Of a stretch of 64,000 nt of DNA, positions 14,031 through 56,143 are shown piece after piece (within the stretch, counting starts at the first letter, position 1; every line of letters starts with the position of its first letter). This stretch comes from Lytechinus pictus. Its lineage: Eukaryota. The DNA lies in assembly GCF_037042905.1 (NCBI RefSeq), contig NC_087259.1:28954001-29018000 (forward strand), in the 5' to 3' direction. The notes beneath the pieces are model-generated. The model ran no database searches. It was given only the letters and a program-made list of their open reading frames with translations, and was not told where the DNA came from. The position numbers and the translations under genes are program-made.

Positions 14031-15574
14031 TGTTTATTGTAATATGATTGATTAATTAGATGCATTAATATGTCTTGGTTTCACTGACATAAGGATGTAA
14101 TTCAGTTTTTGTCCATTTCAATATTTTGTTATTGATAACGCAGATATTAAATTCTATGGAACATTAGTTTAAGTACCTATTCTGCTAATAAAGCAAGAAA
14201 GCACCTGATAACAGCCCAGTAGGGCATACTCTGTTGACATACAAACAGCCTTCATTTTACAACTATCTGCTTGGTAGAAAATAATAAGATATCTCTTTTC
14301 ACCAAATTACTGTTGTTTTAAAGTCCTTTTAATTGCAAACCCTCAATCTGTGTTTCTTCACAAACACAATTTGTAAGGTATTGCAAATATGAATGAGCAA
14401 TTCTTATTAGTTCCCGGGTGTGTATTTTGAACAAAAGGCACATGAACTTAATTGGCCACTACTGTTTTCCAATTAATTGCAAACCTGTGTCTTACAGAGC
14501 TCTGTTGTATTGGTAAAAGTGTTGACCTTTAGATCATGATATTTGTCTATCAAAGTAAAATATCTTTTCTTCTCTCTTTAATTATTATTTTTAATATTGT
14601 ATTTCAACATTTCATGTATATTCAATTAACTGCTGGTTTAGCTTACCTAAGCAAAGAAAAATAAGTTTTATGAAAAAGTTTTTTAAATATGCAATTTAAA
14701 CATTCTTGCCATTCGTATTTGCAAGTGAAATTAAGTTAATTTCAATTTTGCCTTAATGTACATAATGTGTATGTATAGGTGTATTCATTGTCATATTTGA
14801 TTTTGGATATTGTTCCCATATGTAAGACATGATTAATTAAGTCCTTCTACAAGCTTTTTCTGTAAAATATACCATAATTTGTCTCAAGAAAAAAATGTTA
14901 ATGAAAATGTTTTTTTATTGCTATTTCATTCTGTCATTTATGTATGCAAGTTGAATTGTGTGTTTTTTTTTGGAAATATGACCTGAAATAAATTCAAAAT
15001 TTATGTACATGTATGAATATTTCTTTTTGTTGAATAATGATGAATCATATTTCAAATTTGTAGATAATATTTTGATGCACAAAGTCTGGATTTATTCAGG
15101 CTCTCTTAAAAATGAATTGCCAGTAATAATTCTATTGCAATTATATTGAATCCTGAGAGGAAGTACGTCCATGTTAATATTTATATGCCTCATTTGGAAA
15201 TCAGGGTCATGTTTTATAAACACTTGTTCTAATAACAAATGCACAATTTCTCGAACAGGTTTACTATCTACCAATCAAATATAATTATTTCAGTAGCTTT
15301 AAACTGTTATTGCAAGTTTGTTATTGCAATATGTTTTATGAAACAGGCCTAAAGTTAGAAATACACAACTTTCATAAGGATAAGATTCATTTGCTTTTGC
15401 TGAAATTCACAAACATTCTATCATATTCCTTTATATCATAATATGAAAATTTTCTTATGAACTTGACTGGTATAGGTTTATTTGGGGATTTTGCTATTGA
15501 TAATAAATTTTGAAAAACAGTTTTAAATACCTTGTCTTCTTTTTCCATTTATTGTCTTTAATTCAGAAGTGTGC

Positions 15575-18305
15575 TTAATACCTTCACCAACCCACACTCT
15601 CTCACTCCTACTTCCAATACTCACACCAACTCACACAACCCATTGCCACCCTACACACCATCTTCCACTGCTACTTCTAATACTCACACCAACTCACACA
15701 ACCCATTGCCACCCTACACACCATCTTCCACTGCTACTTTCAATACTCACACAACCCATTGCTACCCTCACACACCATCTTCCACTCCTACTTCCAACTA
15801 CTCACACAACCCATTGCCACCCTACACACCATCTTCCACTGCTACTTTCAATACTGACACCAACTCACACAACCCATTGCTACCCTCACTCACCATCTTC
15901 CACTGCTACTTCCAATACTCACACCAACTCACACAACCCATTGCCCCCCTCACACACCATCTTCCACTGCTACTTTCAATACTCACACAACCCATTGCTA
16001 CCCTCACACACCATCTTCCACTGCTACTTCCAATACTCACACCAACTCACACAACCCATTGCCACCCTACACACCATCTTCCACTGCTACTTCCAATACT
16101 GACACCAACTCACACAACCCATTGCCACCCTCACACACCATCTTCCACTGCTACTTCCAAATACTCACACCAACTCACACAACCCATTGCCACCCTACAC
16201 ACCATCTTCCACTGCTACTTCCAATACTCACACAACCCATTGCCCCCCTCACACACCATCTTCCACTGCTACTTCCAAATACTCACACCAACTCACACAA
16301 TCCATTGCCACCCTACACACCATCTTCCATTGCTACTTCCAATACTCACACAACCCATTGCCACCCTACACACCATCTTACACTGCTACTTCCAATACTC
16401 ACACAACCCATTGCCCCCCTCACACACCATCTTCCACTGCTACTTCCAAATACTCACACCAACTCACACAACCCATTGCCACCCTACACACCATCTTCCA
16501 CTGCTACTTCTAATACTCACACCAACTCACACAACCCATTGCCCCCCTCACACACCATCTTCCACTGCTACTTCCAAATACTCACACCAACTCACACAAC
16601 CCATTGCCACCCTACACACCATCTTCCACTGCTACTTCTAATACTCACACCAACTCACACAACCCATTGCCCCCCTCACACACCATCTTCCACTGCTACT
16701 TCCAACTACTCACACAACCCATTGCCACCCTACACGCCATCTTCCACTGCTACTTCCAACTACTCACACAACCCATTGCCACCCTACACACCATCTTCCA
16801 CTGCTACTTTCAATACTGACACAACCCATTGCTACCCTACACACCATCTTCCACTGCTACTTTCAATACTGACACAACCCATTGCCACCCTACACACCAT
16901 CTTCCACTGCTACTTTCAATACTGACACAACCCATTGCCACCCTACACACCATCTTCCACTGCTACTTTCAATACTGACACAACCCATTGCCACCCTACA
17001 CACCATCTTCCACTGCTACTTCCAACTACTCACACAACCCATTGCCCCCCTCACACACCATCTTCCACTGCTACTTCCAACTACTCACACAACCCATTGC
17101 TACCCTCACACACCATCTTCCACTCCTACTTCCAATACTCACACCAACTCACACAACCCATTGCTACCCTCACACACCATCTTCCACTGCTACTTCCAAC
17201 TACTCACACAACCCATTGCCACCCTACACACCATCTTCCACTGCTACTTCCAACTACTCACACAACCCATTGCCACCCTACACACCATCTTCCACTGCTA
17301 CTTTCAATACTGACACAACCCATTGCTACCCTACACACCATCTTCCACTGCTACTTTCAATACTGACACAACCCATTGCCACCCTACACACCATCTTCCA
17401 CTGCTACTTTCAATACTGACACAACCCATTGCCACCCTACACACCATCTTCCACTGCTACTTTCAATACTGACACAACCCATTGCCACCCTACACACCAT
17501 CTTCCACTGCTACTTCCAACTACTCACACAACCCATTGCCCCCCTCACACACCATCTTCCACTGCTACTTCCAACTACTCACACAACCCATTGCTACCCT
17601 CACACACCATCTTCCACTGCTACTTCCAACTACTCACACAACCCATTGCCACCCTACACACCATCTTCCACTGCTACTTTCAATACTGACACCAACTCAC
17701 ACAACCCATTTCCACCCTACACACCATCTTCCACTGCTACTTTCAATACTCACACAACCCATTACCACCCTACACACCATCTTCCACTGCTACTTCTAAT
17801 ACTCACACCAACTCACACAACCCATTGACACCCTACACACCATCTTCCACTGCTACTTCTAATACTCACACCAACTCACACAACCCATTGCCACCCTACA
17901 CACCATCTTCCACTGCTACTTCCAATACTCACACAACACATTGCCCCCCTCACACACCATCTTTCACTGCTACTTCCAAATACTCACACCAACTCACACA
18001 ACCCATTGCCACCCTACACACCATCTTCCACTGCTACTTCTAATACTCACACCAACTCACACAACCCATTGCCACCCTCACACACCATCTTCCACTGCTA
18101 CTTCCAATACTCACACAACCCATTGCCCCCCTCACACACCATCTTCCACTGCTACTATCAATACTCACACCAACTCGCACAACCCATTGCCCCACCCTCA
18201 CCCACCATCTTCCACTCCTACTTCCAATACTCACACCAACTCACACAACCCATTGCTACCCTCACACACCATCTTCCACTGCTACTTCCAATACTCACAC
18301 AACCC
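15575..18305. repeat. 2.7-kb minisatellite, 53-66 bp units
   Basis: Unit ACTCAC(ACCAACTCAC)ACAACCCATTGCCACCCT(C)ACACACCATCTTCCACTGCTACTT(C/T)CAAT, roughly 45 copies, with extreme C/A strand skew. Confidence 0.98.
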
Positions 18306-20048
18306 TTTTTTGTGAAACTTAGAAATGTCACAACGTTCTTATTTTACATTTTAATAAAAAATTCAAGTCAAACTTTGGTTGGGGTGTTCTTGTCCTTTAA
18401 ATATTAAAAAACAAATGAAATAAATTACTCCATTGAATACTGCATGGGACATCAATGATATATAGTTTATTGATTATATATATAAATTATGATCTATAAT
18501 GTTTATTGCGAATTTAGTAATTACTGATTTGGTGCAAATTTGCTGAGGTAATTGAAATTTTGTATTCCAAAGAAGTAATATTAATTGCACAGCTAGGTAT
18601 ATATTTAATTGGAATTAAAAATTAAGGAACACATTCAAACTGCCACAAATTCATTGACATAAAGTCATTAGTATGAATATGCTACATGAAAACAAACAAT
18701 ATATGTTCTTTGGCTTACTAAAACAATGCATCAATTATTCATTTCCTTGTGCTTTATATTCACTTGGTACACAGGCAGTTGGTCTAATACCAGTATCACA
18801 TGAGCTAAACCCATTTGGTCTATATCTGTATACAAATATCATGATCATTGAGATAAAAATGATTTCATAAATGAACATTACGATAATTTTTTGCTTCATA
18901 CTTTTTTTCTTTTTTTATAAGTGCTTGGAAAAGCTATGTAAAACACTATAATGATATGGGTATAGGTTTTGTCTAATCACCATAATATAGATAACTTACT
19001 GTAATTCTGAATAACCAGGATGATATGAACTTACTGGTCAAATGTGATATCTACGGTTAACAGAGTGAAATCTATATAATATCATACACATTTCATTATG
19101 CACAAATTTTGAAAATGTCCTGGTATAGCCTGCCTATCTAAAAGCTAGCAAAGGGTGATTCAGATTCTCGTTCAACTTTGTGTCTGTTTAATTTCCAACA
19201 GCAAAACGGAAGTATTACAATGACATTGCATATGTTATAATCATTATAAAACAATATAAATATATGTAGAGATATATATACAAAATTTTGTGAGTACACA
19301 TTAAAAATGTAAGAGCAAATTTCCACAAGACCAATATCTGGATATGAAGGGATACAGCAAAAGAAAATTTGTATTTTGTCTACAACTGACACACTTCCGT
19401 TTCAGCCATTTCCTGATGTACCTGGGCGAGTGGCTTAATAGGCCTAAATAAATAGCTGTCTTTCGTATTACACAGTAAATTGTCACATGGTCTACACCCG
19501 AATCATCTGCTTTCCGCTACTTCTTATTCCACATGGTCTACTTCTATTTCGTCCCACACCAGGCCATCTACAAACCATTTTATCTGATGTCCAATTAGCC
19601 TATCCCGTGTTGTGTAATATGCACTTTGTATAATAGGTGAATCATATATGTACCAAATTTTCATTTGAAACATTGCAAAATAGTAAGCAGACAATGTATG
19701 TATTAAGTCTTTCCAGAATAATAAAATCTCAAAACTTAAGCTATAACAAAAATTGATGACCTTTTTGACTTAGTGACATCCTCCATTATATCAAATGTGG
19801 ACATTAAACACGACCTACTTTTACCAAATATGGCTCATCATATTGACCAAAGTGACCCCATTTGCCATAAATCGTTATGATGTCATATACATTTAGGTCT
19901 GTCAAAGGTACACTTTATTCATTATTTCAGGAATGAAATGGGTAAATACATTCTTTTTTTTTTCAAGTCTTGATGGTCATGATAGATGATTTGTTTATTA
20001 AATGGAGGAAAGATACAAGTTGTGTCACTTCCCAAAGAGATTTAAGTC

Positions 20049-23000
20049 TTAACGCCAAAGAATATACAGAGCAACTGACAAAACAATAGCATAAAATAAC
20101 CAACTGTTCAACAAACTCCCACTCTGAGAAACCTGTACCTTCCTAGACTGTAAAGGTTTGTTGACTCTTTCCGAGATCGTCATGATAGCATCACGGGCGC
20201 CGCTCCATTGACCAGGTCCAACCAGACGATACTGATACGGTGTGTATGGACCAAAGACGCACTTCAAAGCTAGGACAGGATCAGAGAGTAACATCTTCCA
20301 GAAATCTGGCTTTACACCAAACTCTAGAGCCACCTCATCCATGTATTTAATGAAATCAACTTGGATGGTATGACGTTGGGAGGAGATGTAACGTTTAGCC
20401 ATGGCTTCTTCTTTACTCATCATGTCGGCTTTCATTTGATCTGATGAAGGTAGCTTTGTAAGACCTTTGAACACTCTTGTAGCCCATCTTGCTTGGATCT
20501 CAGATATGGGATTGATGGCACCTAATGGTTGGATGTACCCTAAAAACGCAATGGTGGGATGCTGAAGGTTAACTGGAAACACATACTTGTAGAGTGGTAA
20601 CTTATTCTGCTCTACTTTGATCACAGAATCTTCAAGGAAAGGGAATTTAAATAGGTACCCAGTTCCGAGGATGACAACATCAAGATCTTCAGTGGTTCCA
20701 TCTTGGAACACGACACCTGTTGATGTGAAGCGCTTGACATCCGGTTTGATGATGACTGATCCATTTACAATACAGTTTGGGAGAAAGTCATTGACAGTCG
20801 GATGTTGAGCTAGCAATGAGTGTTCAGGTTGGATACCAAGAAACTTGTGATCCACCCTACTCCTAAAACAAACAAGAAATAGAAATTCAGGTGCATATCA
20901 TCTTAATCAATATACCTGGCCCTGTCTTACAAATATCCAATCAACCACAACTATGGAAAGCCAGCAACATCTACATCTAAAATATATGTTTGTTTAAAAT
21001 ATTTTTCTAGATATATGACGTATATTCATACATTCATTGTTTTCTTGAAGATTCAGTGTGCTCCTCTTTGTTAACAAAGGAAATTGTACAAACTTCCTGC
21101 AGAAAAAAAAAATATGTTGATGAATTTCCATATACTTAAGGTTGATGGGATCAATCATAACACTTTGCAAGATGGAGCCCTGATATACAAATATTTTTTG
21201 GAAAAGGAAAATTGTTTAGCTTGGGAAGTAGTTGCTCTAAATGTCACCTCAGAGGGTTGCGTGTTCAAATCCCACCACAGCATTGAAGTGTCTTTGGGCA
21301 AGGCATCAATTCACGGTTACACTTCGTAATTCCGAAGGTTCTTTATTCCGAAGGTTCATAATTCTGAAACACGTAAATTGCCTATACCCCGATGTTCGTT
21401 AATCCGAAAACGTAAAAGAGTTCGTTAATCCGAACATTTGTGGCGTTATTCCGAAGGTTCGATAATGCGAAAACGAAATAAGGTTCGATGTTCCGAAGGT
21501 TCGTTAATCCGAAAACGAAATAAGGTTCGTTGTTCTGGAGGTTCGTTAGTCTGAAAACGATATAAGGTTCGTTAATCATTTCGTTTTTGGACTAACGAAC
21601 CTTCGGAATTACGAACCTCACTTCGTTTTTGGACTAACGAACCTTCGGAATTACGAACCTCATTTCGTTTCCTGATTAACAAACCTTCGGAATTACGAAC
21701 CTCACTTCTTTTTCGGACTAACGAACCTTCGGAATTACGAACCTCATTTCGTTTTCGGACTAACGAACCTTCGGAAATACGAGCCTTCGGAACAACGAAC
21801 CTTCGGAATAACGAAGCTTCGGAATTACGAATGTATGCGTCAATTCACACCTTGCCAATCTTTACCCAAGTGATAAATGATACCTCTAGGATGAGAAAGT
21901 GAATAATGCATGGCATTAAAATTACAAATTTAATTTCTAGATTTTAATAATGAAAGGAGACAACCACCTCCGTTCGAATTTAAGAACATAAAATATTATA
22001 TCAGATATTAGATTTATGGGATAAATGACTTCACTTTTGACCAAAATATTCTTATCATATATACTTACTCTACAGTAGACCTGAATGCCTTTTCCTTAAC
22101 TGAATTAGGCAAAACATCAAAAATTCTTTGAGGAAAAAAGATACGACCATTAAACAAACGATGGAGAACCCACATTCCTCGACGAGTACTCAGGTAGACC
22201 TGATAGTGAAAGACAAAGTAAATAACCTCTTAAATATTCTCTGTCTCCTCTAGAAATGTCTGATTTTTTATAACTGCAAAAAGTGGAAACTAATTTGACA
22301 CTTCTATACCTAAACCGTTGATTGTTTAAACCCTTTGTAATATAATATAATTAGAGTGTCAATAATTCAAAATGTATAAAAGATGATAAGTTATACAAAC
22401 ATGGGAAGGTAAAATGCAGGTCAAGCCTAACTCAAACAAATGACATTAAAAGCGACACTGAACAAGAAATATATGCCTATATATATTTTAAAAAAGAAGA
22501 AGCAGTTGAACACATATATTGATATTGGTCTCTTTTCGTCTTGGATATATAGTTCAAATTTTGTATTTCCTTCACACTTAAGCAGGAAATTGACCTTTAA
22601 CCTTTCATTTCTGAACATAATTATGACCATGTTGATGAACTCACCTGTGATGCAGGACTGCTCAATTCAACAGCAGCATCACAACCGGAGTTACCCACTC
22701 CTATGATCAAGATGCGCTTATTCTCAAAACCTTCTGGTGTGAGGTAATCATGTGTGTGGAGTACTCGACCATTAAAGTCCTTCAATCCTTCAAATTAAAA
22801 AGTAGCCAGGAAAAGAGTAGACTATCAGCATATTTTGTTTTGTTCATGAAAACTCACATTGTTCAAAATGTAAGATAATTAAGTGATGGGGATATCAACA
22901 ATGGCCGTTTCTGTGGTGCTAGGTGAATCCAGCCACCCTCGTAGTCGGGGATTAAAACCAAATTTAAAACCTGGATTACTCTGCTATGAAGTTTAATATT

Positions 23001-25801
23001 TCCTGTGATTCATACAACATGGATATTTCCGTTTGTCCGAACATATAGTGGCAGCGATGGAAAATGCTCACTGATATGTACAAATTTTGTTATTAATGAT
23101 AAGAGGGTTATCCCACCGCTGCCACCAAAATTCAAAGGGTCCTTAGGAAAGTTAAGAGAAAATCATCTCATCATAGAATACACCAGGCCCCATGCTTAAA
23201 AATAGAAGAACTTTTATTTGGATGAATAAGCATGCTAAAATCTAGTAGGTCTTCTATTTCTAAGTAAAGTACAAACTGGAGAAGAAATCAGATCCAAATT
23301 TTAAAAGTCTCACCATCAAACTCTGGCAGGTGTGGTGTACAGTGATGTCCTGTGCATACAAGAACAGCATCATAGATCTCAGTTACTGACTTGCCAGTTT
23401 CTTGAAGGGTTGTTTTAACTTTCCATTGTCCTGTTTCCTCGAAGTCATCAGCAAAGACAGCAGAATCTACTTTAGTGTGAAAGTGGATGTACTTACGAAG
23501 ATCAAAACGGTCACAAAAGAGATGGTAGTACTTCAGTACAAGTCTGTTGTGCATGTAGTTTGGGAAGTCATCTGGAATAGGGAAGTCACTAGATGTGAAG
23601 ATACAATTAAGGTTCATTACATAACGCTCCATTTCTTTTTTTTTTCAGACAGACGTCATGACAGAAACAAAGTTAAAGAACTCCATTGATATCGATATAT
23701 TCCGTGTATTGTGATTGGCCGGGGAGGATCACTCCCTTTCTTCTCTCAGTTGAATTACATATATGGCTGGAAAGAGTATCTTCTCCCAAATAATTCGATA
23801 CCATATTTATGTGGTTTTTAAAAAAATGACACCTACCAAATCCCCAATTTATGGGGAAAATATATCATTAACACATAATCATTATATATGGCTGGAAAGA
23901 ATATCTTCTCCCAAATAATTTGATACCATATTTATGTGGTATGTCTTCACACTTGGATAATCAGCAGTTATTCTTTGCAATGATGTAAATTTTGATTTGC
24001 GCGCGAGAGGCATGACTGCAATGAATGAATCCAGGGGTTGCATTAAAATCCATTTCAAAACACCTTTCTCAATAATTAACATTATAACGAATTAAACACT
24101 TTTCAGTATCATATCTCAAGTTAATTTTATTGAAAAGGGGTTTGTAAATATGGTTACTTACTCAGGATTATGGCATCATTGGCATTTGGCGCTCATTCAT
24201 TGGAATTATGCCTTACTTTGGCGCAAATCAAAATGTACATCATTGCAAAGAATACCTACTGATTATCCAAGTGTGAAGACATACCACATAAATATGGTAT
24301 CAAATTATTTGGGAGAATAATAATAATTATGATAATAGGCATTTATATAGCGCCATCTAGAAATATTCTATTCCGAGGTGCGTTATTATTATTATTACCC
24401 CGGCCTTAGCTCGAGCTGCCTTTCAGCGCTCCTGCATTAAAGGAAATAATCTGCCAGGTATACCCATTCACCTCACCTGTGAGTGAGTGAGTGACATCAT
24501 CGACTCTCTAATTTTGATGTAACTGGCTCGTTCATATAACTATTTTGTTAAAAATAAGCGAAACTTTGAAATGTCATAACTTTCTTACTTTACATCCGAT
24601 TTTGATGAAATTTTCAGCATTGTGCTTGTCTGATTTTTCTCTATTGATTCAAATCAACATTTTGTTGGGGTGGAACTTTACCGAACCACAATATGTTATA
24701 ACAATGGTAATACCACATGTTCAGGGAGGAATAAAACCACTTTCCACATGACAATGAGTAGAAAATTGGAATATATCATGTCTCTTGTACTAGTCATAAA
24801 ATACAAAAGAAATGGTGAGTGGATGACATCATGAATACCCCCATTTGCATACCGACCTGGATGAGCATAATTATAACTGTTATCAAGCGAAACTTAGAAA
24901 TGTCATAACTTCCTTATTTTACACCCAATTTTGGTGAAGTTTTCAGTGGTTTGCTTTTTTTATTTTTCTCTTTTTATTCTAATCAACTTTTTGTTAGGAT
25001 GGACTGGTCCTTTAAATGAGGCCATCTTTGTTTGTATTTGATATTTTATTAGTGCCGGAAATGAAAAACAGAACTGACCAAAGATCACGATCTGATGGGT
25101 GTGCACACAAAAATAATTTTGTTTTTTCTGGATCAACTCGACACGCATTTCCATGGGCCTTGGTCGTTCTCAAATCATTGACAAAAATAAAATATGTGTC
25201 CCCCCCCCCCCTCCTTCATCAAAATACCCTGGCACAACCCCTGTGTAGAGACAATCAGAAACCGTATTGCTATGACAGGAAAAAAAAAAATCGAGTTTTG
25301 CTTTCAAAACAATCGTCTAGTTGTGGATCCAGGTGGGGACGAATCCAGCCCGTGCCCCCACCCCCTCCCTTTGATAACCATAAAAAAATAATAATGAATA
25401 GTGGAAAATGTCGTGAATTTTATGATTTTTTTTTTTTTTTTTTTTTTTTCGCTTGTCAAATTTTTCGTGACGTAAATTATCATCATTCAGGATTCGGGAG
25501 TGAAGACCCTTTTCTGCACAAAAATGCCCCCCCCCCCTCCCGGGAAACCCCGGATCGGCCCCTGGTGCCCACAATCAGTACTTCAAACTCACCTATAACA
25601 CATGACCTCTTTACTGGTGTTAATAACAGTTGACTTATAGACACATGCCTGATCATCCCTCTCCTCTCGATAATACCACAATCCTCCAATGTTATCAGAT
25701 TTTTCAAAACATACTGGTTCAAGACCCTCATCCAAACAGCTTTTGATTGCAGTCAGTCCACTCGCCCCAGCACCGATGATTGCTACTCTTTTCTTCCCCA
25801 T
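20049..25801 (-). CDS. FMO: Flavin-containing monooxygenase (dimethylaniline monooxygenase, FMO5/FMO2-like), paralogue A, 523 aa
   Basis: Exons 25801-25593, 23588-23314, 22787-22645, 22199-22069, 20862-20049 total 1572 nt with no internal stop. Motifs: FAD-binding GAGASG, GGLW, FMO fingerprint [16 protein letters not shown]-binding GVGNSG, LGTGY and a C-terminal membrane anchor. Orthology to a numbered vertebrate FMO cannot be assigned by eye. Confidence 0.95.
21314..21839. mobile_element. Palindromic MITE built from TTCGTAATTCCGAAGG-type repeats, inserted in a SINE
   Basis: 8-bp TSD TCAATTCA (21306-21313 and 21840-21847). The left half carries CCGAAGGTTCG units and the right half their inverse. 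The flanks rejoin into a SINE (B-box-like GTTCAAATCCC near 21263, continuing TACCCAAGTG at about 21863). Confidence 0.8.
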
Positions 25802-28165: not shown

Positions 28166-28813
28166 GACGGAAAAGGAAAAACCCCGTGTTTGATGTGGAT
28201 GGCTGAGAGTGGGAGTGGTCTAGGCATCCGTCTTCATTCACTGCACCCTATTCATTAGGGGGAAAGGGGCGGGGCATGTTGCCAACGATCAGCTGGCCTG
28301 GCATATATCATGTGACATTACATGATTATCTGAGACGCTGCTGATGAGTAGTTGAGCTTGTCGACGACCGAGTTCGTGATCGTAAGGAAATTATTTTGGT
28401 CTTAAAGTCTTAAACACCTTTACATTAGTAGATCTACTCTTGCTTAAAGAGGTATCTATTTTTTAAAGAAATTTGCATCTATTGTCTACTAAGCGAGGTT
28501 AAGTTTTGGCAGCAATCTTTTTGCCCAACTCACGCGTCACCAACAGGCAACAACATGTACGCGGGCATGTACACAGGTCACAGTACCGTACCTAGCGTGC
28601 GTTACACGCCTGCGCTAGCCGCCTGGGAAATTTGTCGGAAAGGGGTTCGGTATATTTGACTACTACTAGTTCTACTCGGATTTTTTTATTTAGGACTTGA
28701 AGTTTGGTTGTTGAAGTTGAACTGGAGCTTGAGTACTTAACTTAGTCCATTTTATTTAGTCCAACTTTGAAGCCTGTGAAAAGTTAGGCTAGGGACTTTG
28801 ACTATGAATAATC

Positions 28814-29515
28814 TAGACAGCTGGCAGCCGTCTGTTTTAGCCAGGCGGCTTCTAGAGAGTAAAAATCATTTACTAACGTAAGGTTACTCTCATACGAAGC
28901 CAGGCAGTCCTCCCCATTCATCTGCGTGTACCGCAAAAAAACCTGAAACTTTCGCCCCCGAGATTTCTACTTTCCTTCTAAAAGATCTAGCTCTAAATCA
29001 TGTAAATGGGATAAAACTTCATTTCCGACATTTCTACGCTCTCGTTGTTATTTTTAAAACGAGAATTCATCAAAAAAATGAAAAAATATTCTGAAATGAC
29101 AGAAGAGACTTGCCCGATGTTTACGCTGCCATCTTGTTTCTTATTGTACTTCCCCAACGTTACGCGACGCTCGCGTCCGTAACGTTGGGGAAGTACAATA
29201 AGAACTCTTCAATTTTTGTCTTTAATGAATCAAACTTTTGAAAATTAACGCTACCGAAATGCAAATTAATATTCCCTCTTGACATTAATTGCCAAAAAAC
29301 GGGGAAAATCAAGTTAAAAGGAACAAAAACAGTGACTTACCTCGGCTGTCGCGCAACTTCACTGCCCTGTTTTATCCGAACTTAATACACATAAACATAT
29401 GGCCATTGAGTCCCCTGTACAGATCGCGCGAGAACTTCGGTCTCTGTATTTGGTGATGAAGCCAACGGAGTTCAGCTGAACAACCAACATAACAGAGACC
29501 GAAGCTTTTGGTCTA
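28814..29515. mobile_element. Non-autonomous TAGAC...GTCTA element, copy 1 (possibly AcademH-like)
   Basis: Exact 9-bp TSD TGAATAATC (28805-28813 and 29516-29524). Ends are shared with copies 2 and 3. Confidence 0.8.
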
Positions 29516-29547
29516 TGAATAATCTAGCTCAAAGTTAACCCATCAGG

Positions 29548-29687
29548 TAGACAGCTGGCAGCCGTCTGTTTCGAGGAGTTTTTCAACATTTTTTTATTTT
29601 TTTAATTTCTCCTCGTACACAGTGGAGCCAACGTAGTTCAGCGGAACAACCAACATAACAGTGACCCAAGCTTTTTGTTTTGGTCTA
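29548..29687. mobile_element. Non-autonomous TAGAC...GTCTA element, copy 2 (140 bp)
   Basis: Exact 9-bp TSD CCCATCAGG (29539-29547 and 29688-29696). Confidence 0.8.
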
Positions 29688-30059
29688 CCCATCAGGGAGC
29701 TCAAAGTCAAACTTTTTAAAGTCAGGATTATTACTTTCAATCTTAAAAAATGGTTGAGAGTTGAGGTTTGCTGCATGAGGTCTAGTCTGCATGTAGCATT
29801 TTGCAAAAATTAGTCATATTATGGTGATCATTTTTTTTTCTCCAAACACGCACAACAATTTTCTCATTTTTAAAAGTTTAATTTTACCATCTGCCAGCAG
29901 GAATACAGTTTTCTAGACCTTGTTATGTACAGTCATTCCTGATGTTAAGTATACCAATGTACAATTGAAGACAAGATCTAGGTCACTAGGTGGATATAGT
30001 GTGTGAGATATAACCATGTACGCAATTATTTATCCCACATAGATTGATATAAAGCCACA

Positions 30060-33000
30060 ATGGGGAAAAGGATTGCAATCATCGGTGCTGGAGCAAGTGG
30101 ACTGGCGGCGATCAAATGTTGTCTGGATGAGGGTCTTGAACCAGTATGTTTTGACAAAGCAGATGATATCGGAGGACTGTGGTACTATCGGGAAGAGCGG
30201 GAGGACCAAGGCTGTGTGTATGAGTCAACGGTTATCAATACGAGCAAAGAGGTTATGTGCTTTAGGTGAGTATACATCCCTGGGTGATTTTAATCATCTC
30301 ATATCTACATCATAACCCAGTATCATACATGCATAACATCACTTACATATATTCAAATTAAGGAAGCCCAACCAATATAAATAAAGAGAATGGTGGAGCC
30401 AACTAAAAGTGTAGTAGTCTAAGTCATAATAAAATTATCAGAGATAAGTGAATGGAGGTAAATAACATGTTGGAATGAAAAGGAGAAAATTGAACCAAAA
30501 TGTGAGAATGATTTACCATATCTGAATAGGAGAGGAATGACATAGAGAAGCGGGTCAAGTGTCAAATAGAAATGGATGACAACACAAGCTTTCAGAATGT
30601 AAACGAAGCCGAATTAAATTAAAAGCTGCAAGTTCATAATTAACTTTTAACAAGGAAATTCTAATGTATGTCAAAATAAAATTAATAAACGTCTTTCTTT
30701 CCATCTATTACAACTATTAAAGGATCCAGTTAAATGCCTGATTGGTGCATGGGCATTTTGGGCATAGAGGTAGGCTAGTTGTTATAGAAGGCTTCATTGG
30801 AGAGTCATAAAATATAAAAGGTTCACAACCAAAAGACAGATAAGATGGATCTCTAAAAAAATTCTTGATTGATTTACTCTCACCCTCTTTGAACAGATTA
30901 ACAAAAGATAATGTCAAGTGAGATCTAGGGCCTCTTCACACAAGCAATTGATCCTTGAAAATTTCATTTTGACTGATTGCCTTGCCTTTGGTCATTATGC
31001 AATTGATCATAAAATTAATTGTACCGTCCATAAATCTGTAGAAGCTATTAATGCAGTACAGGAAGTAAGGAACTTTTCATCCTATCCACTAGACATCTTG
31101 TCTGAATTCTGTACGTCAGTGCCATTTTAAACGGTTCCAACTCAAGCCCTTAAGTACTCGTATGGTTCCCGGATCCTTTCCAAGGCTGCAATATTTTTTT
31201 TATATAGAACTAGTCTTATAATGTAGTTCTAACTACTAAAAGATGAATAATGTTCATCTCATACATGTTGCATTTGCAGAGAAAATAACACTTGTTTCGA
31301 AGCATTCATTCATTTTCAATCAAGATGGATGAACATCATAATTTTAAAACCAAGATTAACCATATATTTATATTCATATTTGTGAAAGATGGATGAAGAG
31401 CATCTCAATACATATGACCCTATGGCAAGATCTTCATCGTGCTTGAATTCCTTGGTGTTAATGTCCTTTTCCAAGTGGTATGAAGCACTGATATCAATTT
31501 GAATTGAGCAACAAAGAATTATGTTGTGTGTTTGCACGTATCATTGAACCTTGGAAAATCCCAAACGGTTGCTGATTAAAGATAAGGGAGTACCAAAGTT
31601 CAAATTACCATGAAAGCAGTCAATATGGCTATAGAAAAGAACCATGTATGCTGAGGACTTAATATTTGGCAATCTTCTGCAGGCTGCCAAAATATGACAA
31701 GGATAACAACACCAAAGCATGGTTCAGGTCTCATATTTGGGAAAAGTTCAATTTAATTTGCTAGTCTCATCAATCTTTATTTGATAGTGAGCATTTATTT
31801 TCATGACAGGAACATTGACCTAATCACATTCAAGTGTCTCTCTAGTTGGTACTGGGTGCTTTGGCCATTCTTGTCACTGCTTCATCGTACCCCTCTGCAT
31901 GACATTTTGCAATATGATAATTTAAAGGCATTTCCATGGTCTACCCTTATCTTTGTTCTGAACAAACTTCCTTTGGTCTAATCAACAAGCCCTTATCACA
32001 TAACATTACATGCCACAGCCATTTCTTTTATCTTTCTCTGATTGTTTTGATCAGTCTTCTTGAACTACATGTAGTTGCAACACACTGATTATTCTATCCC
32101 TCCATAAAAACCCCTATCACTCTGTACTAGTACCAGATTTCTAACACTATGGCTCTGTGACACATAACTCGATGATTGACCATTCAGTTGTATGATTGAT
32201 TGTACAAAATGATAATTGTGATCAGATCTAATCCTAAGATGTTAATGAAATTGGAAACAATACATGATGCCAGGAAAGTGAGTTGGTGATATATTGGTCT
32301 CATTAGGCCTACTAAAGTTACAAAGGTTCAAATCAAGTCCATGCTGTAACTATACGTTGACCTTAAAGGACAAGACCACCTCAACAAAAAGTTGGCTTGA
32401 ATAAAGAGATAAAAAATCCAACAAGCATAACACTGAAAATTTCATCAAAATTGGATGTAAAATAAAGAAGTTATGATATTTTAAAGTTTCGCTTAATTTC
32501 ACATAACAGTTATATTCACATCCTGGTCAGTATACAAATAAGAAGACTGATGACATCATCTACTCACTATTTCTTTTGTATTTCATTACATGGAATATGA
32601 AATTTTCTAATTTTTTCCTCATTGTCATGTAAAACAAAGTTTTTATTCCTTTCTGAACATGTGGAATTACCATTATTTTAACAGTTTATGGTTAAGTCAA
32701 GTTGGTCCTTATTGTCAAATCTGTAAACAATTGTGTAATTCAAACAATAAAAAAAAACCAAAGAAATGGTGAGTGAAGCACATCATCAACTCTCTCATTT
32801 TGCATGTCGCTGAGTTGTGCATTTAACTGTTTTGTGAAAAATAAGCAAAACTTGAAAATGTCATAACTTTCTTATTCTACATCCAATTTTGATGAAATTT
32901 TCAGTGTTATGCTTCTCAGTTCTGTGATTTTTCTCATTTTTTTCATATCAACTTTTTTCTGAGGTGGACTTGACTTTTAATGATGATTCCTGCATATCAG

Positions 33001-36000
33001 GGATATTTAACCTGTTGCTTACTGGAACCAAGTAGTTCTTATCTCCATGTAGAAAATCTAGGGATTTTCTTTTTTAAGTGAGTTTTAAATGACCTTGTTT
33101 TATTTTTAATTCGATCATTTAATTTTCCTGCTGAAAATGATAGTTTTAATGTTTCATCAACTTTCTTCAGGATTGATTTGAAACTAATACCATATGAGTG
33201 CATGTTCAATGTAGTATCTAGCTGGTATAAACAAGGAGATTCTATGACTGGAGTTCCAACAGTCAACAAATTTATTCAAGCAGCTGTTCATTTCTAAAGA
33301 AGCACAAAAGAAAGAACGGGAATAAGGACCCTTTTGATGTCCAGCTTCGAAGCCGCCAGTTTCAGTGAAGAAATCCGGGGGGTGACATTTTACGAATATT
33401 CATTTGTATCGATTTTCCATCTTCCATATTAATAACCAAACTGAAATTTGAATGCATGACAAAACATCAATAACCAAGCACTATTACGACGAGATATTTG
33501 CCCAGATTATATCAATTAACCTTTAATTAGTGAAAAAAGAACGAATTTGACCTTTACTGAAACCAGATTTTAACACTTTTCCGATCGTTTGCGGCGATTG
33601 AAAATTTTAAATGTGGTTGATGGAATATTGTTGTTCATTACTGTATATGGCTCAAACCCACTATCTCGGCGCAATTCTGAAATTTTGGTGTCGTTAAGGA
33701 TTCTGCTTATATTATTAAGAAATTAAACATTGCAGATGATGGTTCTTGCATCTCATCGCTTCGGTGGCACTTGCCGATAAAAATGAGACCCATTTTACCG
33801 GGAAATAAAGCCCGAAGAAAATAAAATGGCACACTAAATGTGGGATAAGTGTGAAAAAACCCCTGTCGCCAGAAAAGAAAATCTGTCATTTGAATGTTTT
33901 TTCATCAAATATTCACAAGACATCTTTCTAAAAATGCATTAAAAATAACCGTTTTTGATTGTCCATGTGAGATATTAAAGAAAAATTGTGTTGCTTTTGA
34001 TATGAATAATATTTTACATCAACCAAAATTTGTCCCAAATTATCTGTAACATACGTTACCATGTTTTAACGAAATGTGTTTTAGGGAAGAAAAGTCAGTT
34101 GTTCCATCGGAATAACGGTTTTCTGTTTCACAACAGATATAGAAACTACAACCGTGTAGATTAGCATTTAGATATTTGAACAATTTTGCCACACATGAAA
34201 AATCCTTTTTAGTGAAAAACGTATATTTAAGGAGTGTAACATACGTTACCATCGTTTGTGTTTATTCAGAGAAGCATGCTCATTTCATCTCTGTTTATTT
34301 TTAGGTATTGACGTATGAAAGCTAGTAAATCGAGAAAAAAGAAAAAATAACCACTCTAAGTTTGAAATATATGACAATTTATAAAAAAATTTGTAACCTA
34401 CGTTACGTAACATACGTTTCCAGTTTGATATATTCTTCTAATTAACCTATGTAAATCCATTTCCCCGGAACATATACATTGGTACCCATCTTAAACATTT
34501 AGTTCCCTCTACGGCAATTGAAAGAAACCTTAGCAACCTCATGGAATCCACATAAATGAATGGTGCGCTTGTTGGCTAGTCATCTTAAAGTGTTCAAAAA
34601 CAAATAGGTAAGTACAGAGATCGATATCATATTTGTTTTTAGATATATTTACATTATTTTTTTGAAATATTCACCACTTACGTGCATCTCTTAAAAACTC
34701 ATTTAGTAATTTCATGTGAAATTAATCAATTTTACTTTTAGAAGGCATTATACCACGCCTTTTGTGGTAACGTATGTTTCAGGTGATGGTAACGTAGGTT
34801 ACCATATTAACATGTATTCTATATAAACAATATTTTAGAAACTAGTGGTATGTATCAACCATAAATTCATTATAAACTTTCAGAAGGGCACTTCTCTTGT
34901 AAATTGACGCTCTTAAACCGTATGAAAATTTGAACATTTTCTTCTTTATAAATAGTAAGAAAGCAACATCCATGGAATATTTTATGTCAATGACAATGTA
35001 GCTGTCATTTTAATCAACATTATCTTGAAAGGAAATGTTTACAAATGAATACCAAATTTGCACATCGATAACCCTAAATCATAAGATAAGCTTCTGGTAC
35101 CTATTTCGTAAACTGGATTTGATTATTTTTATCGATTATTTCCAAAAAACTAAGACAAGTTGTGGTAACGTATGTTACATGTATCATTCAAGTCAACATT
35201 ATGAGATAAGTCAGTCAATGCCAATGGATAATGTTGGATTAGATATTATATTTTCAAACACACATTTTTATTTATATCTTGCAGGGATGGGCAAGACAAG
35301 GGCCGAAATTCAGGCCGCCTATCGACAGCGGAAACGACAGCAAATTGGAGATGCTGCTTTCCTCCGCGCAGAACGGGAGAGGCAGAAGAAATACTACGTT
35401 CGAGTTGAGAATTTGCCAAAGAAAAAAGCAGAAGAGAGAAGGGTCCAAGTGCGGTCAAGAGTACAGAAGCACAGAGTAAGGGTCAAGAAAGTGAAGCAAG
35501 ACATGTACAATGAACGACATCAGGAAAACATTGATAGCTCAGTGATTGAAAGCGATACAACGCAAGACTCTGCGCTGTCAGATGTATCTTACATTGCTCC
35601 GCGTAGTCCTCTGAAAGTAAAGATGGCATTTCCGGTCAAGAAGAGGAGAAATCGTGTTAGCAGGTGCCTGAGCAATGCTCACCGGAGAATCGAGGCACTT
35701 ACTCTTAAACTCCAGGAAACAGCAAAGGGAAAACGCAGAGTTCAGAGAAGATACCAGAGGCTTCGTAAGAAACTTCCAACGTCTTCAACACCATTTCATG
35801 GGGTTTCGAGGAACACACCACGCAGTAAGACAGACAGCCAACTCAAGAAATCTGGTTTAGATCCTAAGTCTGTTCCAGCTGAAATTAAGAAGAGGCTACT
35901 CTTCTTCAACGCGGTAATCCAGGAAATACAATCTACCGCTGGATCCAGCACCAACCAGACAAACAGGGCGAATCTTCATAAGCTGGTGGCAGGAGCCAAG

Positions 36001-39000
36001 ATATTGAAGAAATACCGCCTGCTGAGGATGGTACAGAAGGGTACTGGGCTGGGAAGACGCAACTTGTCAAAGGCAAACACAAATAATGTCAGCCAACGCA
36101 AGCAGCTCCGGCGTTCTTGGTACATGCTACACGAAGAAGTTGTAACTTTCATGGAGAGGGAAGACAACTCACGCATGTGTCCCGGCAAGAAGGACTGTTG
36201 CAAAACAGATGACATGGGGAACAAGAAACAGAAGAAGTTTCTTTGCGATTACATGTCAAATCTCCATGCCAAGTACATTGCAGAAAATCAAGACAAACGC
36301 AAGGTATCCCTGTCTGCATTCCAACGTGTCCGCCAAACGCGATGTCCCCATATTAAGCCTGTTCAATTCTTGTCCAGGAACCTTTGCTTATGCCCAAGAC
36401 ATCAGAACATGGCCTTGAAGCTGAAAGCAATGAAATCCATGGGTTTGCCTGTAGTCGAAAATCCTGATGAATTCATTAGACGCCACACCGATGATGAGGT
36501 ACATGATCTCCTCTCTGATTTGCAGCCTGGTGTGATTCAGTTTGAAGAATGGGCTAGAGTTGAGGCTGATGGCAGAAAGAAGATTAAACTCATCAATGTG
36601 TCACTGGCGAAGCAGGAGTTCATCGCTCGCCTCAAAACGAGCATCCAAGAATTTCGTCAACACGTCTTCCGAATTAAGAAACAGTTTGAAGCACTTTCTG
36701 ACTGCAAGAAGAATTTGCCCAAAGGAGAATGCTTGGTGCAAATGGACTTTGCCGAAAATTACACATGTGTGCCCTTAGAAGAAGTACAAAGTGGGTATTG
36801 GAATCAGGAAGGTGTAACAATCCATCCGCTGGTGGTGTACTTCCGGGAGGACGACAACAATCTCAGTCATCAGAGCTACGTTGCTGTGTCTGATGAAAAG
36901 GGGCACAATTCGTCTACAGTAATTGCCATTCTGAACCAAGTTATCCCCCGCCTGAAGAAATTGGTCCCACAGCTTTCGAAGATACACTACTGGACTGATG
37001 GGCCCACATCCCAATACCGCAACAAAACTATCTTTTCTTTGATAGGGGACCATGTTGAGGTGTACGATGGAATCCATGCCCAGTGGAACTTCTTTGAAGC
37101 TGGACATGGAAAGGGGCCATGTGATGGTATCGGGGGTACTGTAAAACGCATGGCCGACAATGCTGTCAAGCGCAATGCTGTAATACAAGACGCAAAGGAT
37201 TTCTTTGCCTGGGCATGCCAGGAGCACGGTTGCGAGAATGATTCAAAGATTGACTTTTTCTTTGTGAGCAAAGAAGAGTGTGTCTCAAGCAGTGAACTCA
37301 TTGCACAAAGGTGGGCATCAGTCAAGACCTTCCCAGGAACTTTGCAAGTGCACGGCGTCATTGGATACGACAAAGGGGTTCTCCTCAAAGACGTCTCTTG
37401 CTACTGCGCAAAATGCCGTGTAATGAACCCTGCTGACACCAATCAAGTCGAGCATATGTGTGAAGGTTGGCAACTTCGCCGTTTCGTGAGGGGGCCCATG
37501 AAGCAAGTTCAGCCAGACAAATGTGACGACCCTGAGAGAGATGGTGTTGGAGAGCCTACTGGTGTAGTGAATAAGACATTCAACCAATCGTCTACCAGCG
37601 TTCCAGTGCAGTATCACACTGATGACTGGGTTGCTGCTGTTTATGAACAACGATGGTACTTGGGGAAAGTGCTCGAATCCGACAAAGATGATGTTCACGT
37701 GGACTTCCTCACTGAGTGCACAGGTCCTCGAAATCAGAACAAATATAAATGGCCAACCAGCAGTGACTCAATCTGGGTAGCAAGGAAAAACGTACTGTGT
37801 TCCGTAAACCCACCCAAACGCGACTCCATTTCCAAAAGATTTTTTGTTCTCTCTGACAACCAAAGGGCAATGGTCGAGCAGGCGTTCAAAGCGTTCAGTT
37901 CTCGCTCATAAAGTAGAACACTCCCATTTGTTCATAGCCCACCGGACTCAAACAATTAGAGTGCTTTAATTCCATTGTGTAGGGGTAATCCATCATTATT
38001 CGGTAGAATCTGTTTTCATTGTTGCACTTTCGATCTGGTTGCTGTTATTCGATTTCTGTTGCTGTATTTCAATTTATATGAGATTATGATATTTGAGATG
38101 AATAGCAAAAGAAAAATGCTATTTAGATATACAGAAATCTGTTATTTTTTATTCATGGAAACAAGATGCAAAAATAACTGTTACATTCCAAAGACCATTT
38201 TGAGCAATATCCTGTGCATAAATCAAACCAAGTAAATGATGTAACGTTAATCTGGGGTGGGGGTGGGGATGTAGATAGGCTGCTCAAGAGCATGGAACAA
38301 TTATTTAAGGAGACGAGTATGCCTTATGTAAGTAGATGTACGTAGTTGTTAAATTTCAGTTGAAAATGTTACCTAACATTTGAATTAAGGGATTTTTTAT
38401 GAGATATCACCCGATGAAAGGTTTGCTTATAGTTATTCTATTATTTCCTTTAAAGTGTCAAGTTACCTGTTAGATCTCTTTGACTAACGCAATTATTCAT
38501 TTTCTTACGGACAAATGTTTGAAAGTAGATCCATTTCTCCATCTAAACTTTGATATTGTAATACGTATTTTCACATTTAGGATTGTAACATACGTTACTT
38601 ATGAATATAGGCATTCACTCAGCGATGCATGTGTCTACCGTGTTTTTAATTTTATGTGGCACATGGACATATCGAATGTATATAATGTGTGCATTATAAG
38701 AATGAAAGTGGTTAACAGGAGAAGTGTTATAATTTCTCATGAAAATTGATGTAATATTCGCAAAAGTTATTACATAACAGAGTTATTGGATTGCATATCC
38801 TAACTAAATAAAACATATACAGTTACTAAATAAATTTGAAAGGTAAAATGATAACAAAGTACACGGGCTCGAAAGAAAAATACCAGTTTATTCATTTCAT
38901 ATGGTTAATGTCATATATATTCTGAAAAGTGATATTGTTCTCCTCTGTAAGGTTAACTCATTCTTCAAGTAACCTACGTTACTCATCTACGTAACTTACG

Positions 39001-42000
39001 TTACCAAATTTTATTCAACTGGTACTCGTATTCTATTTCCCCAAGATCACTTCTTCATGCCAAAGTTATATAATGTGACTTAATATTTTTAGATCATGGC
39101 TGGAAAAAAAAATCAGTCTTTAAAATTTCATTACCTATCAGACAAGATATGATGACACTTAGATAATTATTCAGCCTTCATAATGTAGAAGTTCGTATTT
39201 TGTAAAAACTGCAGAACAAGATCACCTATATTCCACTTAAACGTTTTCCAGTCTCTTTGTTTAATAGCTTAACTGGAATCTAGAGCAAAGGCCGTGATCT
39301 GAAAGTGCATATTAAAATGTATTTTTCCCCTTTTAGTGTCTCGGGTCATGGTAACGTAGGTTACACCGTGTGTTTTGCATCCACAAGATGAAACATGTGT
39401 AATTCTTAAACCAAACAATGTTGAATGCTCATCTCTTGGAATTTGAAACTTTGTTGTTTAATGTTTCATTATAAAATAAAGACAAACTTGCTACTGAAAC
39501 TTTATTTTTTTTTAAATTGAATGTTCTTAAATGCGCCGATTTACTGGTTTTGACCCTTATGCCAGATGAGTGCCCGCACATGCCCAGTCGAGCAAATTTG
39601 AGTCAAATTTCATAGTTTATTTTTGCATGCCTCCGAATTATGTACTACACATATAACCAGACCAAGATGCGGCGAAAAAGTAATTATCATCACAAAAGCA
39701 TATTTCCCTTTCTGTATGACCTATAGCTGCGGAGTCATGCGGGAATCATTTGTCTACACAATTGCAAGAGATGTTGAGCAAAGTGCATGCCTGACATACT
39801 TTCTGCTGGCGGCTTCGAAGCTTGTTCAAAGGGATTTTGTTTGCTGTTACTCCATCTCATTTAAACCTCCTTTGTATAAATAAAGTTCTGATGTGTTTCA
39901 ATTATTGAAAGCTGATGCAAGATACTTATCGTTTTGTTTTACTTTAATAGTTTAGAGTAAACCAACTTAACACACTTTTGGGTTTGTATTTTTCACTTGT
40001 CAAATAGGAGAGATTTATTTAAGTGACATTCTCTTTTTCATTTTTGTCTTCATATACAGTGATTTCCCAATTCCAGATGACTACCCAAACTTCATGCACA
40101 ACAGACTTGTGCTAAAGTACTACCGTCTCTTCTGCGATCGTTTTGATCTTCGCAAGTACATTCGCTTTCACACTAAAGTAGATTCTGCTGTCTTTGCTGA
40201 TGACTACAAGGAAACAGGACAATGGAAAGTTACAACAACCCATCAAGATACTGGCAAGTCAGTGACCGAGATCTATGATGCTGTGCTTGTATGCACAGGA
40301 CATCACTGTACGCCATACACGCCAGATTTTGAAGGTGAGACTTTTTAATTTGGATGAGATTTCCTCTCCATTTTGTTATTTCACTCAACAAAAATAGGCC
40401 TTTAAGATTTTAGCATGTTTATTCGTACCAGTGAAAGGTGTTCTTTTATATACTTGGGTTATAAATGAGATGAGGTACTTCCAAAGGTTCCTTTGAATTT
40501 AGGTGGCAGCGGTGGGATTTGTCTCATATCATCAAGAATGACATTTTACCTGCATCATGATGTGTTAGATATAACAGAATCTCTATATCACTGTACACTA
40601 TATATCCCAGAGTTTGAAGATGAGAATGTAAGGGAGTGGACATTGTACATACATTGTATTGGGGCAACCCAGAATCCAATGTTTGGGGATAATTTGTATC
40701 TGTAAACCACTTGAATATGTTGTTCATATGCGATAAGCGCCATAAGAAAGTAGAATAACACTCTTTTTATTATTCATATATATGATATCTATCTGTCTTA
40801 TCAGTTGCACTCTCTCTCTCTCTTTCTCTGTCATCTATGATGTTAGGACTGAAGGAGTTCAAAGGTCAGGTTCTTCATACGCACGATTACTTGAAGCCGG
40901 ATGGGTTTGCCAAGAAACGAATCATGGTAATTGGAGTGGGTAACTCTGGATGTGATGCTGCTGTGGAGCTTAGTAGGTGTGCATCCCAGGTCAGTTTGAG
41001 GTCATGGTCATATAGGGAGGACTGCCCCTCCCTCCAAAAAGTGCAACAACAAAGAAACACACTAAGAGCACTGGAAAACTAGAAATTAAAAATGTCCACC
41101 CTTCGATTTCCTATAGTATTTGATAAAAAAAACTCTACTATATTGTAGCAAACAAAACTTACACAGAATTATTTTTTTTTAAAGAAAGGGAACTATCTGC
41201 CACACAATTTGTCAGGAAAATGTGTAATAACAGCAAATGAAGATGAAATAAATTACTGAAAAATGCCTGTCCATTTATAGTGTGGTCCCACACGTTGTTT
41301 CCTGTGTTAGCTACACCAGGCAAAGCCTGTGGTAATGAAATTAATATATGGTATCAAGCAAGCCTGAATTATTTTCATCAAACTTTGTTGTTCTAAATAA
41401 GCATTCTGGCATTGGATAAACACTTAAGGATTGCGTCGAACTATCTTATCAAATTAGATTTCTATACCAGAATTGGAATGCAGCTTTTAATAGCTATCAA
41501 AGTGAATATGTGCCAAATGATTCTGGTTCGAAGATGTATAATTGCTGAGAAAGTGACAAACCAAGCTTGATATTATTCCAGCCAGATTTTGGGTCTTTTT
41601 CCAAACAATAACAATATTAGCTACCCCACATGGTAATTCTTTTTTCATCTTAGATTTTATGATGCGCTAGGTTCATGTACGAGAAATCTGTGTCACAAAG
41701 GTTAGCGATTAATTGTACGCTTGATTTTCACAATTGATTTTACATTGTAGTCAATGCAATCAGTCTTAGCAAAATGTTCTACGATTATTGCTAAGCTTTG
41801 TTATGGGCCCTGGATCTAGATCTACCATGATAGGTTGACAAGTATATTTTAAAGACTCTCATGAAAGTATTGTTCACTGCATTACAGGTACTTGACTTTA
41901 ACATCTCACTGAATTTAAGGTCATTGGTAACAAGAGGTCATGAGTTCATGATTGAAGAAATTGGGTGTGTATCAAACTTCAAATGGCAGAGGCGTAAATT

Positions 42001-55696: not shown

Positions 55697-56143
55697 TAGA
55701 CCAAAAGCTTCAGTCTCTGTTATGTTGGTTGTTCAGCTGAACTCCGTTGGCTTCACTCACCAAATACAGAGACCGAAGTTCTAGCGCGATCTGTACAGGG
55801 GACTCAATGGCCATATGTTTATGTACTTAAGAGCGGATAAAACGGGGAAGTGAATTTGCGCGACAGCCGAGGTAAGTCACTGTTTTTGTTCGTTTTAACT
55901 TGATTTTTCTCTGTTTTTTGGCAATTAATGCCAAGAGGGAATATTAATTTGCATTTTGGTCGCGTTAATTTTCAAAAATTTTATTCATTAAAGACAAAAA
56001 TTGAAGAGCCCCGACGGGGGGATTTTGCATTGCAAGTCCCCTAATGGTGGCTGCACGATAGCGAGCCGTCTGTGTACGAGGAAAAATAAAAATAATAAAA
56101 AATGTTAAAAAACTCCTCGAAACAGACGGCTGCCAGCTGTCTA
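55697..56143. mobile_element. Non-autonomous TAGAC...GTCTA element, copy 3 (inverted relative to copies 1 and 2)
   Basis: Exact 9-bp TSD CAGCTAACG (55688-55696 and 56144-56152). 55697-56008 is a close reverse complement of 29205-29515. Confidence 0.8.

Follow-up and report, generated by a model that had tools for sequence, protein, structure and literature searches.

An abundant family of non-autonomous DNA transposons in Lytechinus whose inverted ends are unusually short

Three copies of a small repeated element, two of them close neighbors at 28805-29696, are present in a 64,000-nucleotide stretch of Lytechinus pictus DNA (RefSeq assembly GCF_037042905.1, contig NC_087259.1, positions 28,954,001 to 29,018,000 of the forward strand), referred to here as the window and numbered from its first base. 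Judged from these copies and from their flanks in public sequencing runs, the element belongs to a real DNA transposon family that is non-autonomous, is present in high copy and has inverted ends of exceptional shortness. The whole is best explained, and probably so, by an abundant family of small, non-coding cut-and-paste elements with boxed ends and a palindromic target, mobilized by a DDE transposase acting in trans. A sequence-only reading of the window had instead proposed a lineage that recognizes its ends by their structure and chooses targets resembling its own termini. That interpretation is supported in part: the mobile family, its 9-bp target-site duplications (TSDs) and its five inverted terminal bases stand, and the target mimicry is contradicted by the flank consensus.

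A mechanical scan of the whole window, which includes 539 N, for TAGAC...GTCTA pairs flanked by the same 9-mer returns exactly three pairs and no others. Together with direct reading it bears out the three copies of 702, 140 and 447 bp with exact 9-bp TSDs that had been described from the sequence. Copy 1 (702 bp, + strand) occupies 28814-29515 and is flanked by TGAATAATC at 28805-28813 and again, as TGAATAATC, at 29516-29524. Only 32 bp further on, copy 2 (140 bp, + strand) extends over 29548-29687, with CCCATCAGG on its left at 29539-29547 and the matching duplication on its right at 29688-29696. Copy 3 (447 bp, 55697-56143) lies on the - strand; its TSD reads CAGCTAACG on the + strand at 55688-55696, on the 3' side in the orientation of the element, and recurs at 56144-56152 on the 5' side. 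The 21-nt 5' end occurs exactly three times in the window against none expected, and the 3' end motifs are far more frequent there than chance allows. A diverged 5'-end fragment of a related family, TAGACAGCCTTCTGTTTGGAGGAG, is also found at 56254-56293 on the + strand; a partner 3' end or TSD for it was looked for and not found.

Evidence at the level of the family comes from contigs of four public runs under two organism labels, placed on 28600-29900: three runs of organism A, which are not independent of each other, and one of organism E. The whole stretch is present in none of the runs, the best of which holds 26% of the sampled words. The element itself is covered by 8460, 5836, 7190 and 1210 contigs in the four runs. 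Its flanks are at single-copy depth (about 35-60), as against a summed depth of 1e5-9e5 inside the element, a quantity that is not to be equated with copy number. The family comprises hundreds of copies at the very least, and probably thousands. Contigs cease to match exactly behind 29515 in 133-143 cases per organism-A run and in 40 cases in organism E, and exactly before 29548 in 89-96 and 32 cases, respectively. Beyond both breaks the consensus is close to random, with an agreement of 0.35-0.39. Exact shared breakpoints with near-random flanks mark 29515 and 29548 as true termini of the family. The three exact TSDs, together with more than 100 flanks per organism-A run that end at the termini, establish a genuine mobile family with 9-bp TSDs and minimal terminal inverted repeats (TIRs), as the sequence-only reading had it. 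Both the initial T and the final A are part of the element, and the TSD is therefore of 9 bp and not of 10. A 10-bp duplication that includes the terminal A was considered and rejected: the base at -10 is not constant, and the A at 29515 lies within the shared sequence.

Exact staggered duplications, fixed ends and deletion derivatives are the reasons for proposing cut-and-paste movement in trans, in which a DDE-type transposase would cut the target with a 9-bp stagger. It is highly improbable that the repeat is something other than a DNA transposon, such as a short interspersed element (SINE) or other retroposed sequence, a Helitron-like or IS200/IS605-like single-strand element, or a segmental repeat. 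The asymmetry of the ends and the presence of a hairpin close to one of them might be taken in that sense. A constant 9-bp TSD at constant termini, seen in the three copies and in more than 100 flanks, speaks against it, as do the internal-deletion derivatives that keep both ends. Nor is there a poly-A or simple-repeat tail or a tRNA or other RNA-gene head; no tRNA was found in the element, and no Rfam match to it above threshold. Helitrons and IS200/IS605 elements make no TSD, and a hairpin-guided element of either type, which would be expected next to its hairpin at a short target of fixed sequence, was rejected on the exact 9-bp duplications, whose sequences are unrelated to one another.

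The three copies differ in length and are related by shared modules. Their first 24 nt are identical. Positions 392-702 of copy 1 align with positions 136-447 of copy 3 at 93.6% identity, which defines a common 3' module (29205-29515, + strand, in copy 1) whose last ~125 bp are the best conserved. Positions 1-75 of copy 2 align with 1-74 of copy 3 at 93% identity, and the last ~56 nt of copy 2 are 88-89% identical to the 3' ends of copies 1 and 3. The description of the copies as having different interiors thus needs qualification. It is true of copy 1, which has 367 nt absent from copy 3, and does not hold for the modules that copy 3 shares with the other two. By these alignments copy 3 is the standard, or reference, form of the family, or at least the nearest to it in the window. 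Copy 2 is, on the same grounds, a copy 3-like element with an internal deletion: at its junction ~72 nt of copy 3-like 5' sequence run directly into the final ~65 nt, and the inner arm of the 3' hairpin described below is gone. Internal-deletion derivatives typically come from incomplete gap repair at the donor site, and copy 2 may have arisen in this way. It was possibly shortened in place, and it is therefore uninformative as to whether the hairpin is needed for movement.

Conservation is concentrated at the ends. Copies 1 and 3 differ in 3 of the last 127 alignment columns versus about 17 of the preceding 192. Among the variants listed from the public runs (those at 10% or more), none falls in 29431-29583 except a single 1-nt insertion in the hairpin loop, and at least about ten fall in 29205-29430. 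By this measure the family is conserved over its first ~35 bp and over a 3' stretch of ~120 bp that takes in the hairpin, with an interior that is variable and modular. Such conservation of the ends is expected of sequences needed in cis.

Copy 1 departs from this plan in that it is, as far as its sequence and the contig breaks tell, a chimera carrying a second, sibling 5' end. After the 24-nt terminal box come 367 nt without counterpart in copy 3. A foreign module at 28838-29123 (+ strand) starts with a sibling 5'-type end, TAGCCAGGCGGCTTCTAG, and closes with an inverted, degenerate 5'-type end. At this closing end, 29059-29123 aligns in inverted orientation to the canonical 5' region and stops exactly at the terminus (score 38, against a shuffle mean of 24.9 and standard deviation of 3.9). 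The module is itself highly repeated in the public runs (depth 1e4-1e5). Contigs break off before 28838 in 68 cases in run X1 and 62 in run X3, both of organism A, and the consensus upstream of the break is random; the sequence from 28838 is therefore the terminus of another abundant unit. Depth in the bin that holds 28814-28819 is in the hundreds, not 1e5, and the arrangement of a canonical box next to a sibling end must accordingly be rare. Most simply, copy 1 could have originated from a sibling element nested in, or against, a canonical one, the composite then being mobilized via its outer 5' box in combination with the 3' end common to the family. A near-perfect palindrome of 67 bp (29138-29204, no strand assigned), with 27-nt arms that are 100% complementary, lies where the shared 3' module is joined. 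It folds at -34.4 kcal/mol (z -12.4) and has sub-threshold matches to miRNA precursors in Rfam, for example to mir-2041 at 34.8 bits against a gathering score of 70; it is probably just a hairpin-shaped piece of transposon.

The ends of the element have an architecture of their own. Direct reading agrees with the earlier statement that only five contiguous bases, TAGAC/GTCTA, are inverted at the termini. The canonical 5' terminal box, identical in all three copies, is T-AGAC-N11-GTCT-GTTT (28814-28837, + strand). The 3' terminal box, G-AGAC-N11-GTCT-A (29497-29515, + strand), is a 19-nt quasi-palindrome that overlaps the outer arm of a subterminal inverted repeat, or hairpin, at 29435-29504 (+ strand). 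Written out, the termini are T-AGAC-AGCTGGCAGCC-GTCT-G on the 5' side and, after inversion, T-AGAC-CAAAAGCTTCG-GTCT-C on the 3' side. The motif AGAC-N11-GTCT thus stands one base inside the terminus at both ends, and 12 of 21 positions are identical on inversion. The ~70-nt 3' hairpin is real, with perfect arms of 13 nt at 29435-29447 and 29492-29504, 100% complementary and 44 nt apart, and pairing that extends to about 20 pairs. Its partial deletion in copy 2 is likewise confirmed: the inner arm is lost and the region does not fold. Folding energies, computed as single-stranded DNA and compared with shuffled sequences, are -18.2 kcal/mol (z -3.5) for the hairpin of copy 1, -15.7 kcal/mol (z -3.1) for that of copy 3, and -6.9 kcal/mol (z -0.3) for the equivalent region of copy 2. 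The 5' quasi-palindrome has no notable fold (-3.1 kcal/mol, z -0.6). The last 19 nt of the 3' end, themselves a quasi-palindrome, reach -4.1 kcal/mol (z -3.0). Of the asymmetric hairpin ends that had been described, the 3' hairpin is upheld and the 5' fold is unremarkable; with a quasi-palindromic box at both ends, the two are less asymmetric than first described.

These features suggest, as a reading of the terminal sequences, that the ends bear a shared TAGAC-N11-GTCT box geometry. Each end would then consist of a ~20-bp quasi-palindromic box placed one base in, instead of a long TIR. In the inner hairpin arm a half-box (CGGTCTC) recurs in inverted orientation, and it is this further half-box copy on the 3' side that would create the "70-nt hairpin". 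GTCT/AGAC occurs seven times in copy 3, mostly at the ends, which amounts to 15.7 per kb versus 5.6 per kb in the window. On this model the end motifs would be double-stranded binding sites for a symmetric (dimeric) transposase rather than single-strand structures.

An alternative, the original proposal, holds that the family is a nearly TIR-less lineage whose transposase recognizes folded hairpin ends and prefers CTA-N9-TAG targets that mimic the element's own termini. Several observations invite it: only five contiguous bases are inverted, the 3' hairpin is real and conserved, the copy 1 site is a long palindrome ending in CTA/TAG, and the sibling 5' end in copy 1 adjoins the canonical terminal box as if one member had landed in the end of another. 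It is nonetheless improbable. The 5' "hairpin" folds no better than shuffled sequence (z -0.6, as above). The outer hairpin arm of copy 3 has an uncompensated C>T change, and the inner-arm consensus of copy 2-like relatives, taken from loose ends before 29621, does not compensate the two outer-arm changes of copy 2; both point, weakly, against selection for pairing. The hairpin arms are without listed variants in the public runs, and these are therefore silent on pairing. In addition, staggered 9-bp TSDs mark the chemistry of a DDE enzyme on duplex DNA, whereas the known hairpin-guided single-strand transposases leave no TSD.

In its target preference, too, that proposal departs from the data. 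The empty sites do read CTA-N9-TAG, TAA-N9-GAG and CTA-N9-TTG for the three copies, and the extended symmetry of the copy 1 site is as had been noted. The flank consensus, drawn from 89-143 flanks per organism-A run and 32-40 from organism E, gives a different picture: it has A at -11 and T at +11, the -10 and +10 positions are variable with no fixed base, and from the CTA-N9-TAG motif only C(-12) and G(+12) are kept (C-A-n ... n-T-G). Positions -14 to -11 read AGCA in all four runs, and +11 to +14 read TGCT, TGCT, TGCC and TGAT across them. The organism-A consensus of the TSD itself is near GTTTAAAAC, and the outer flanks have runs of A on the 5' side and of T on the 3' side. Taken together, the flanks approximate AAAAGCA-n-GTTTnAAAC-n-TGCTTTT, a palindrome of 25 bp with the TSD at its center. 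The window lends this some independent support: among the six half-sites of copies 1 to 3, three match at least three of the four bases of AGCA or TGCT (P about 0.002). Under the favored account of duplex binding sites and a DDE enzyme, target choice would be weakly directed by sequence to the palindrome AGCA-n-[9-bp TSD, about GTTTnAAAC]-n-TGCT. Such a palindromic preference would explain local hotspots such as that of copies 1 and 2, only 32 bp apart.

The surroundings of these two copies have further peculiarities. The 10-mer AGCTCAAAGT occurs at 29526-29535 and 29698-29707, each time at the same distance (TSD plus one base) downstream of one of the two elements, and only 13 bp (TAACCCATCAGGG) lay between the two occurrences before the insertion of copy 2. 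The AGCTCAAAGT pair looks like a short insert between duplicated 9-10 bp, possibly a scar left when an older element with a 9-10-bp TSD was excised. Read as a scar, with copy 2 inside it and copy 1 12 bp upstream, it would imply three events within about 35 bp. ACTTT/AAAGT motifs abound in the single-copy DNA around copies 1 and 2 (28680-28813 and 29697-29760), which forms a local palindrome, GACTTTGA...CTCAAAGTC, about the copy 1 target as its center; this ACTTT/AAAGT-rich palindrome may make the spot a hotspot.

It is important to set out the observations that weigh against the account favored here. No coding copy of the family and no transposase belonging to it were seen, and the arguments for a DDE mechanism and for the superfamily are drawn from the TSD and the pattern of deletion derivatives. 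With regard to the ends, beyond the first five bases 7 of 16 positions match, a post-hoc reading that is not significant alone, and the diverged relative at 56254 is without the TAGAC-N11-GTCT spacing. The target motif is composed of plurality letters among the flanks listed, at an agreement of 0.35-0.39, and not of counted frequencies. It is weakened by the non-independence of the three organism-A runs, and the same letters could arise if a single palindromic host repeat were often hit. A search for a second TSD around the foreign module of copy 1 matched only 3 of 9 bases; since no second duplication survives, the nested-insertion account of copy 1 is one that we infer. Finally, there is no copy in 89 kb of other echinoderm DNA, of which 54 kb is from Lytechinus, a result that is compatible with ~1 copy per 100 kb. 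This sample was reached via the flavin-monooxygenase (FMO) genes of the window, with which it does not overlap, and consists of two distant-echinoderm contigs, a paralogous locus of L. pictus and the orthologue of that locus in L. variegatus.

Other searches were also negative within their scope. Exact-pattern scans with the 5' and 3' ends found no match in metagenome, viral or prokaryotic genome contigs. The open reading frames (ORFs) of the element have no family matches, an exact-product look-up of an ORF inside it returned no record, and no candidate emerged when one of its ORFs, of 43 aa, served as query in a word search. A literature search on sea-urchin miniature inverted-repeat transposable elements (MITEs) and on Academ in Lytechinus yielded nothing useful.

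By the length of the TSD, the candidates for the superfamily are AcademH, Mutator-like elements (MULEs) and, less likely, Merlin. As autonomous partner the first choice is an AcademH element, which would encode an Academ-type DDE transposase and an SF2 (RecQ-like) helicase; this choice has about an even chance of being right. AcademH was legitimately named as a candidate on first reading. Its TSD is given as 9-10 bp (PMC10045372, citing Kojima 2020, Mobile DNA 11:15), a range that includes the 9 bp of this family, and AcademH occurs in animals. The likeness has its limits: transposase and helicase are the property of AcademH and the copies here are non-coding, and the copy number of the family appears to be far above that of AcademH in a fungal survey, where it is low-copy (PMC10799480).

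A MULE family without TIRs or with short TIRs, moved by a MURA-type transposase, is somewhat unlikely, though it is the second choice after AcademH. MULEs make 9-bp TSDs, and non-TIR lineages of them occur in plants and fungi. The exact 9-bp TSDs of all three copies, the near absence of TIRs and the abundance of non-coding derivatives with variable interiors are all in keeping with this. MULEs also often land near the 5' ends of genes, and copies 1 and 2 are situated between divergent FMO genes, with about 370-1250 bp from them to the FMO exon that follows downstream at 30066-30271. Against it, no MURA-type gene or MURA-like ORF was seen, and the termini, TAG...CTA, begin with TAG where those of MULEs commonly have G-rich starts. 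Long TIRs of ~100 bp or more are likewise absent, the inverted identity being of 5 contiguous bases, or of 12 in 21 with gaps.

Comparison with MITEs and hAT elements places the family further. Like MITEs it is small (140-700 bp), non-coding, high-copy and flanked by TSDs, with conserved ends and variable interiors. Classical MITEs, in contrast, have clear TIRs of 10-30+ bp, while the ends of this family share the gapped TAGAC-N11-GTCT and differ in their subterminal architecture; its TIR amounts to 5 contiguous bp plus GTCT at equal spacing at both ends, the extra matches being not significant alone. With hAT elements, whose ends are YARNG and which have subterminal repeats of binding sites, it shares TAG-type termini, short TIRs, repeated subterminal half-sites and a palindromic target consensus. 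It differs in its TSD of 9 bp, that of hAT elements being 8 bp. A hAT origin was ruled out on this ground, since the adjacent bases vary and the boundaries cannot be shifted to give 8 bp.

A more far-reaching form of the AcademH assignment may be considered, in which the family would represent a highly successful 9-bp-TSD lineage, possibly AcademH-related, where a single palindromic box of ~20 bp at each end has taken the place of long TIRs. One symmetric protein assembly would both bind these boxes and pick the palindromic AGCA-N11-TGCT target, with repeated hits at the same few bases and insertions into the ends of other members. This extended scheme is rather unlikely to be right as a whole. 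Apart from its ends, the family is an otherwise ordinary, tidy transposon family of known kind.

The genomic setting of copies 1 and 2 is the interval between two divergently oriented FMO5-like flavin-monooxygenase genes. One, on the - strand, spans 20052-23632 with its last exon at 20052-20855. The other, on the + strand, spans 30066-43340 with its last exon at 42627-43340, and the two copies are about 370 bp upstream of its exon at 30066-30271, recognized by similarity to FMO exons. A Sola2-like element at 33343-39822 lies apparently between exons of the + strand FMO gene; an exact-product look-up of its 958-aa ORF returned no record. At 15500-18400 the GC skew is extreme (-0.84) and more than one frame contains long ORFs; this part of the window looks like a C-rich simple or tandem repeat. 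Among metagenome assemblies, the ENA assembly ERZ26222911 contains echinoderm contigs (L001 and L002, at 4-6x) with FMO genes of ~72% exon identity to those of the window.

If the partner is indeed an AcademH element, the family would be a non-autonomous derivative present in something like thousands of copies, in a superfamily called low-copy in fungi (PMC10799480). For genome annotation, the family is relevant through its frequent insertion near genes, and MITE finders based on TIRs would miss it because its inverted identity is only 5 bp. To our knowledge there is no experimental study of transposition in the Academ superfamily. The sea urchin host is now genetically tractable, and the short, defined ends of these elements, together with a measurable target preference, would offer a compact substrate for a first transposition assay in this animal.

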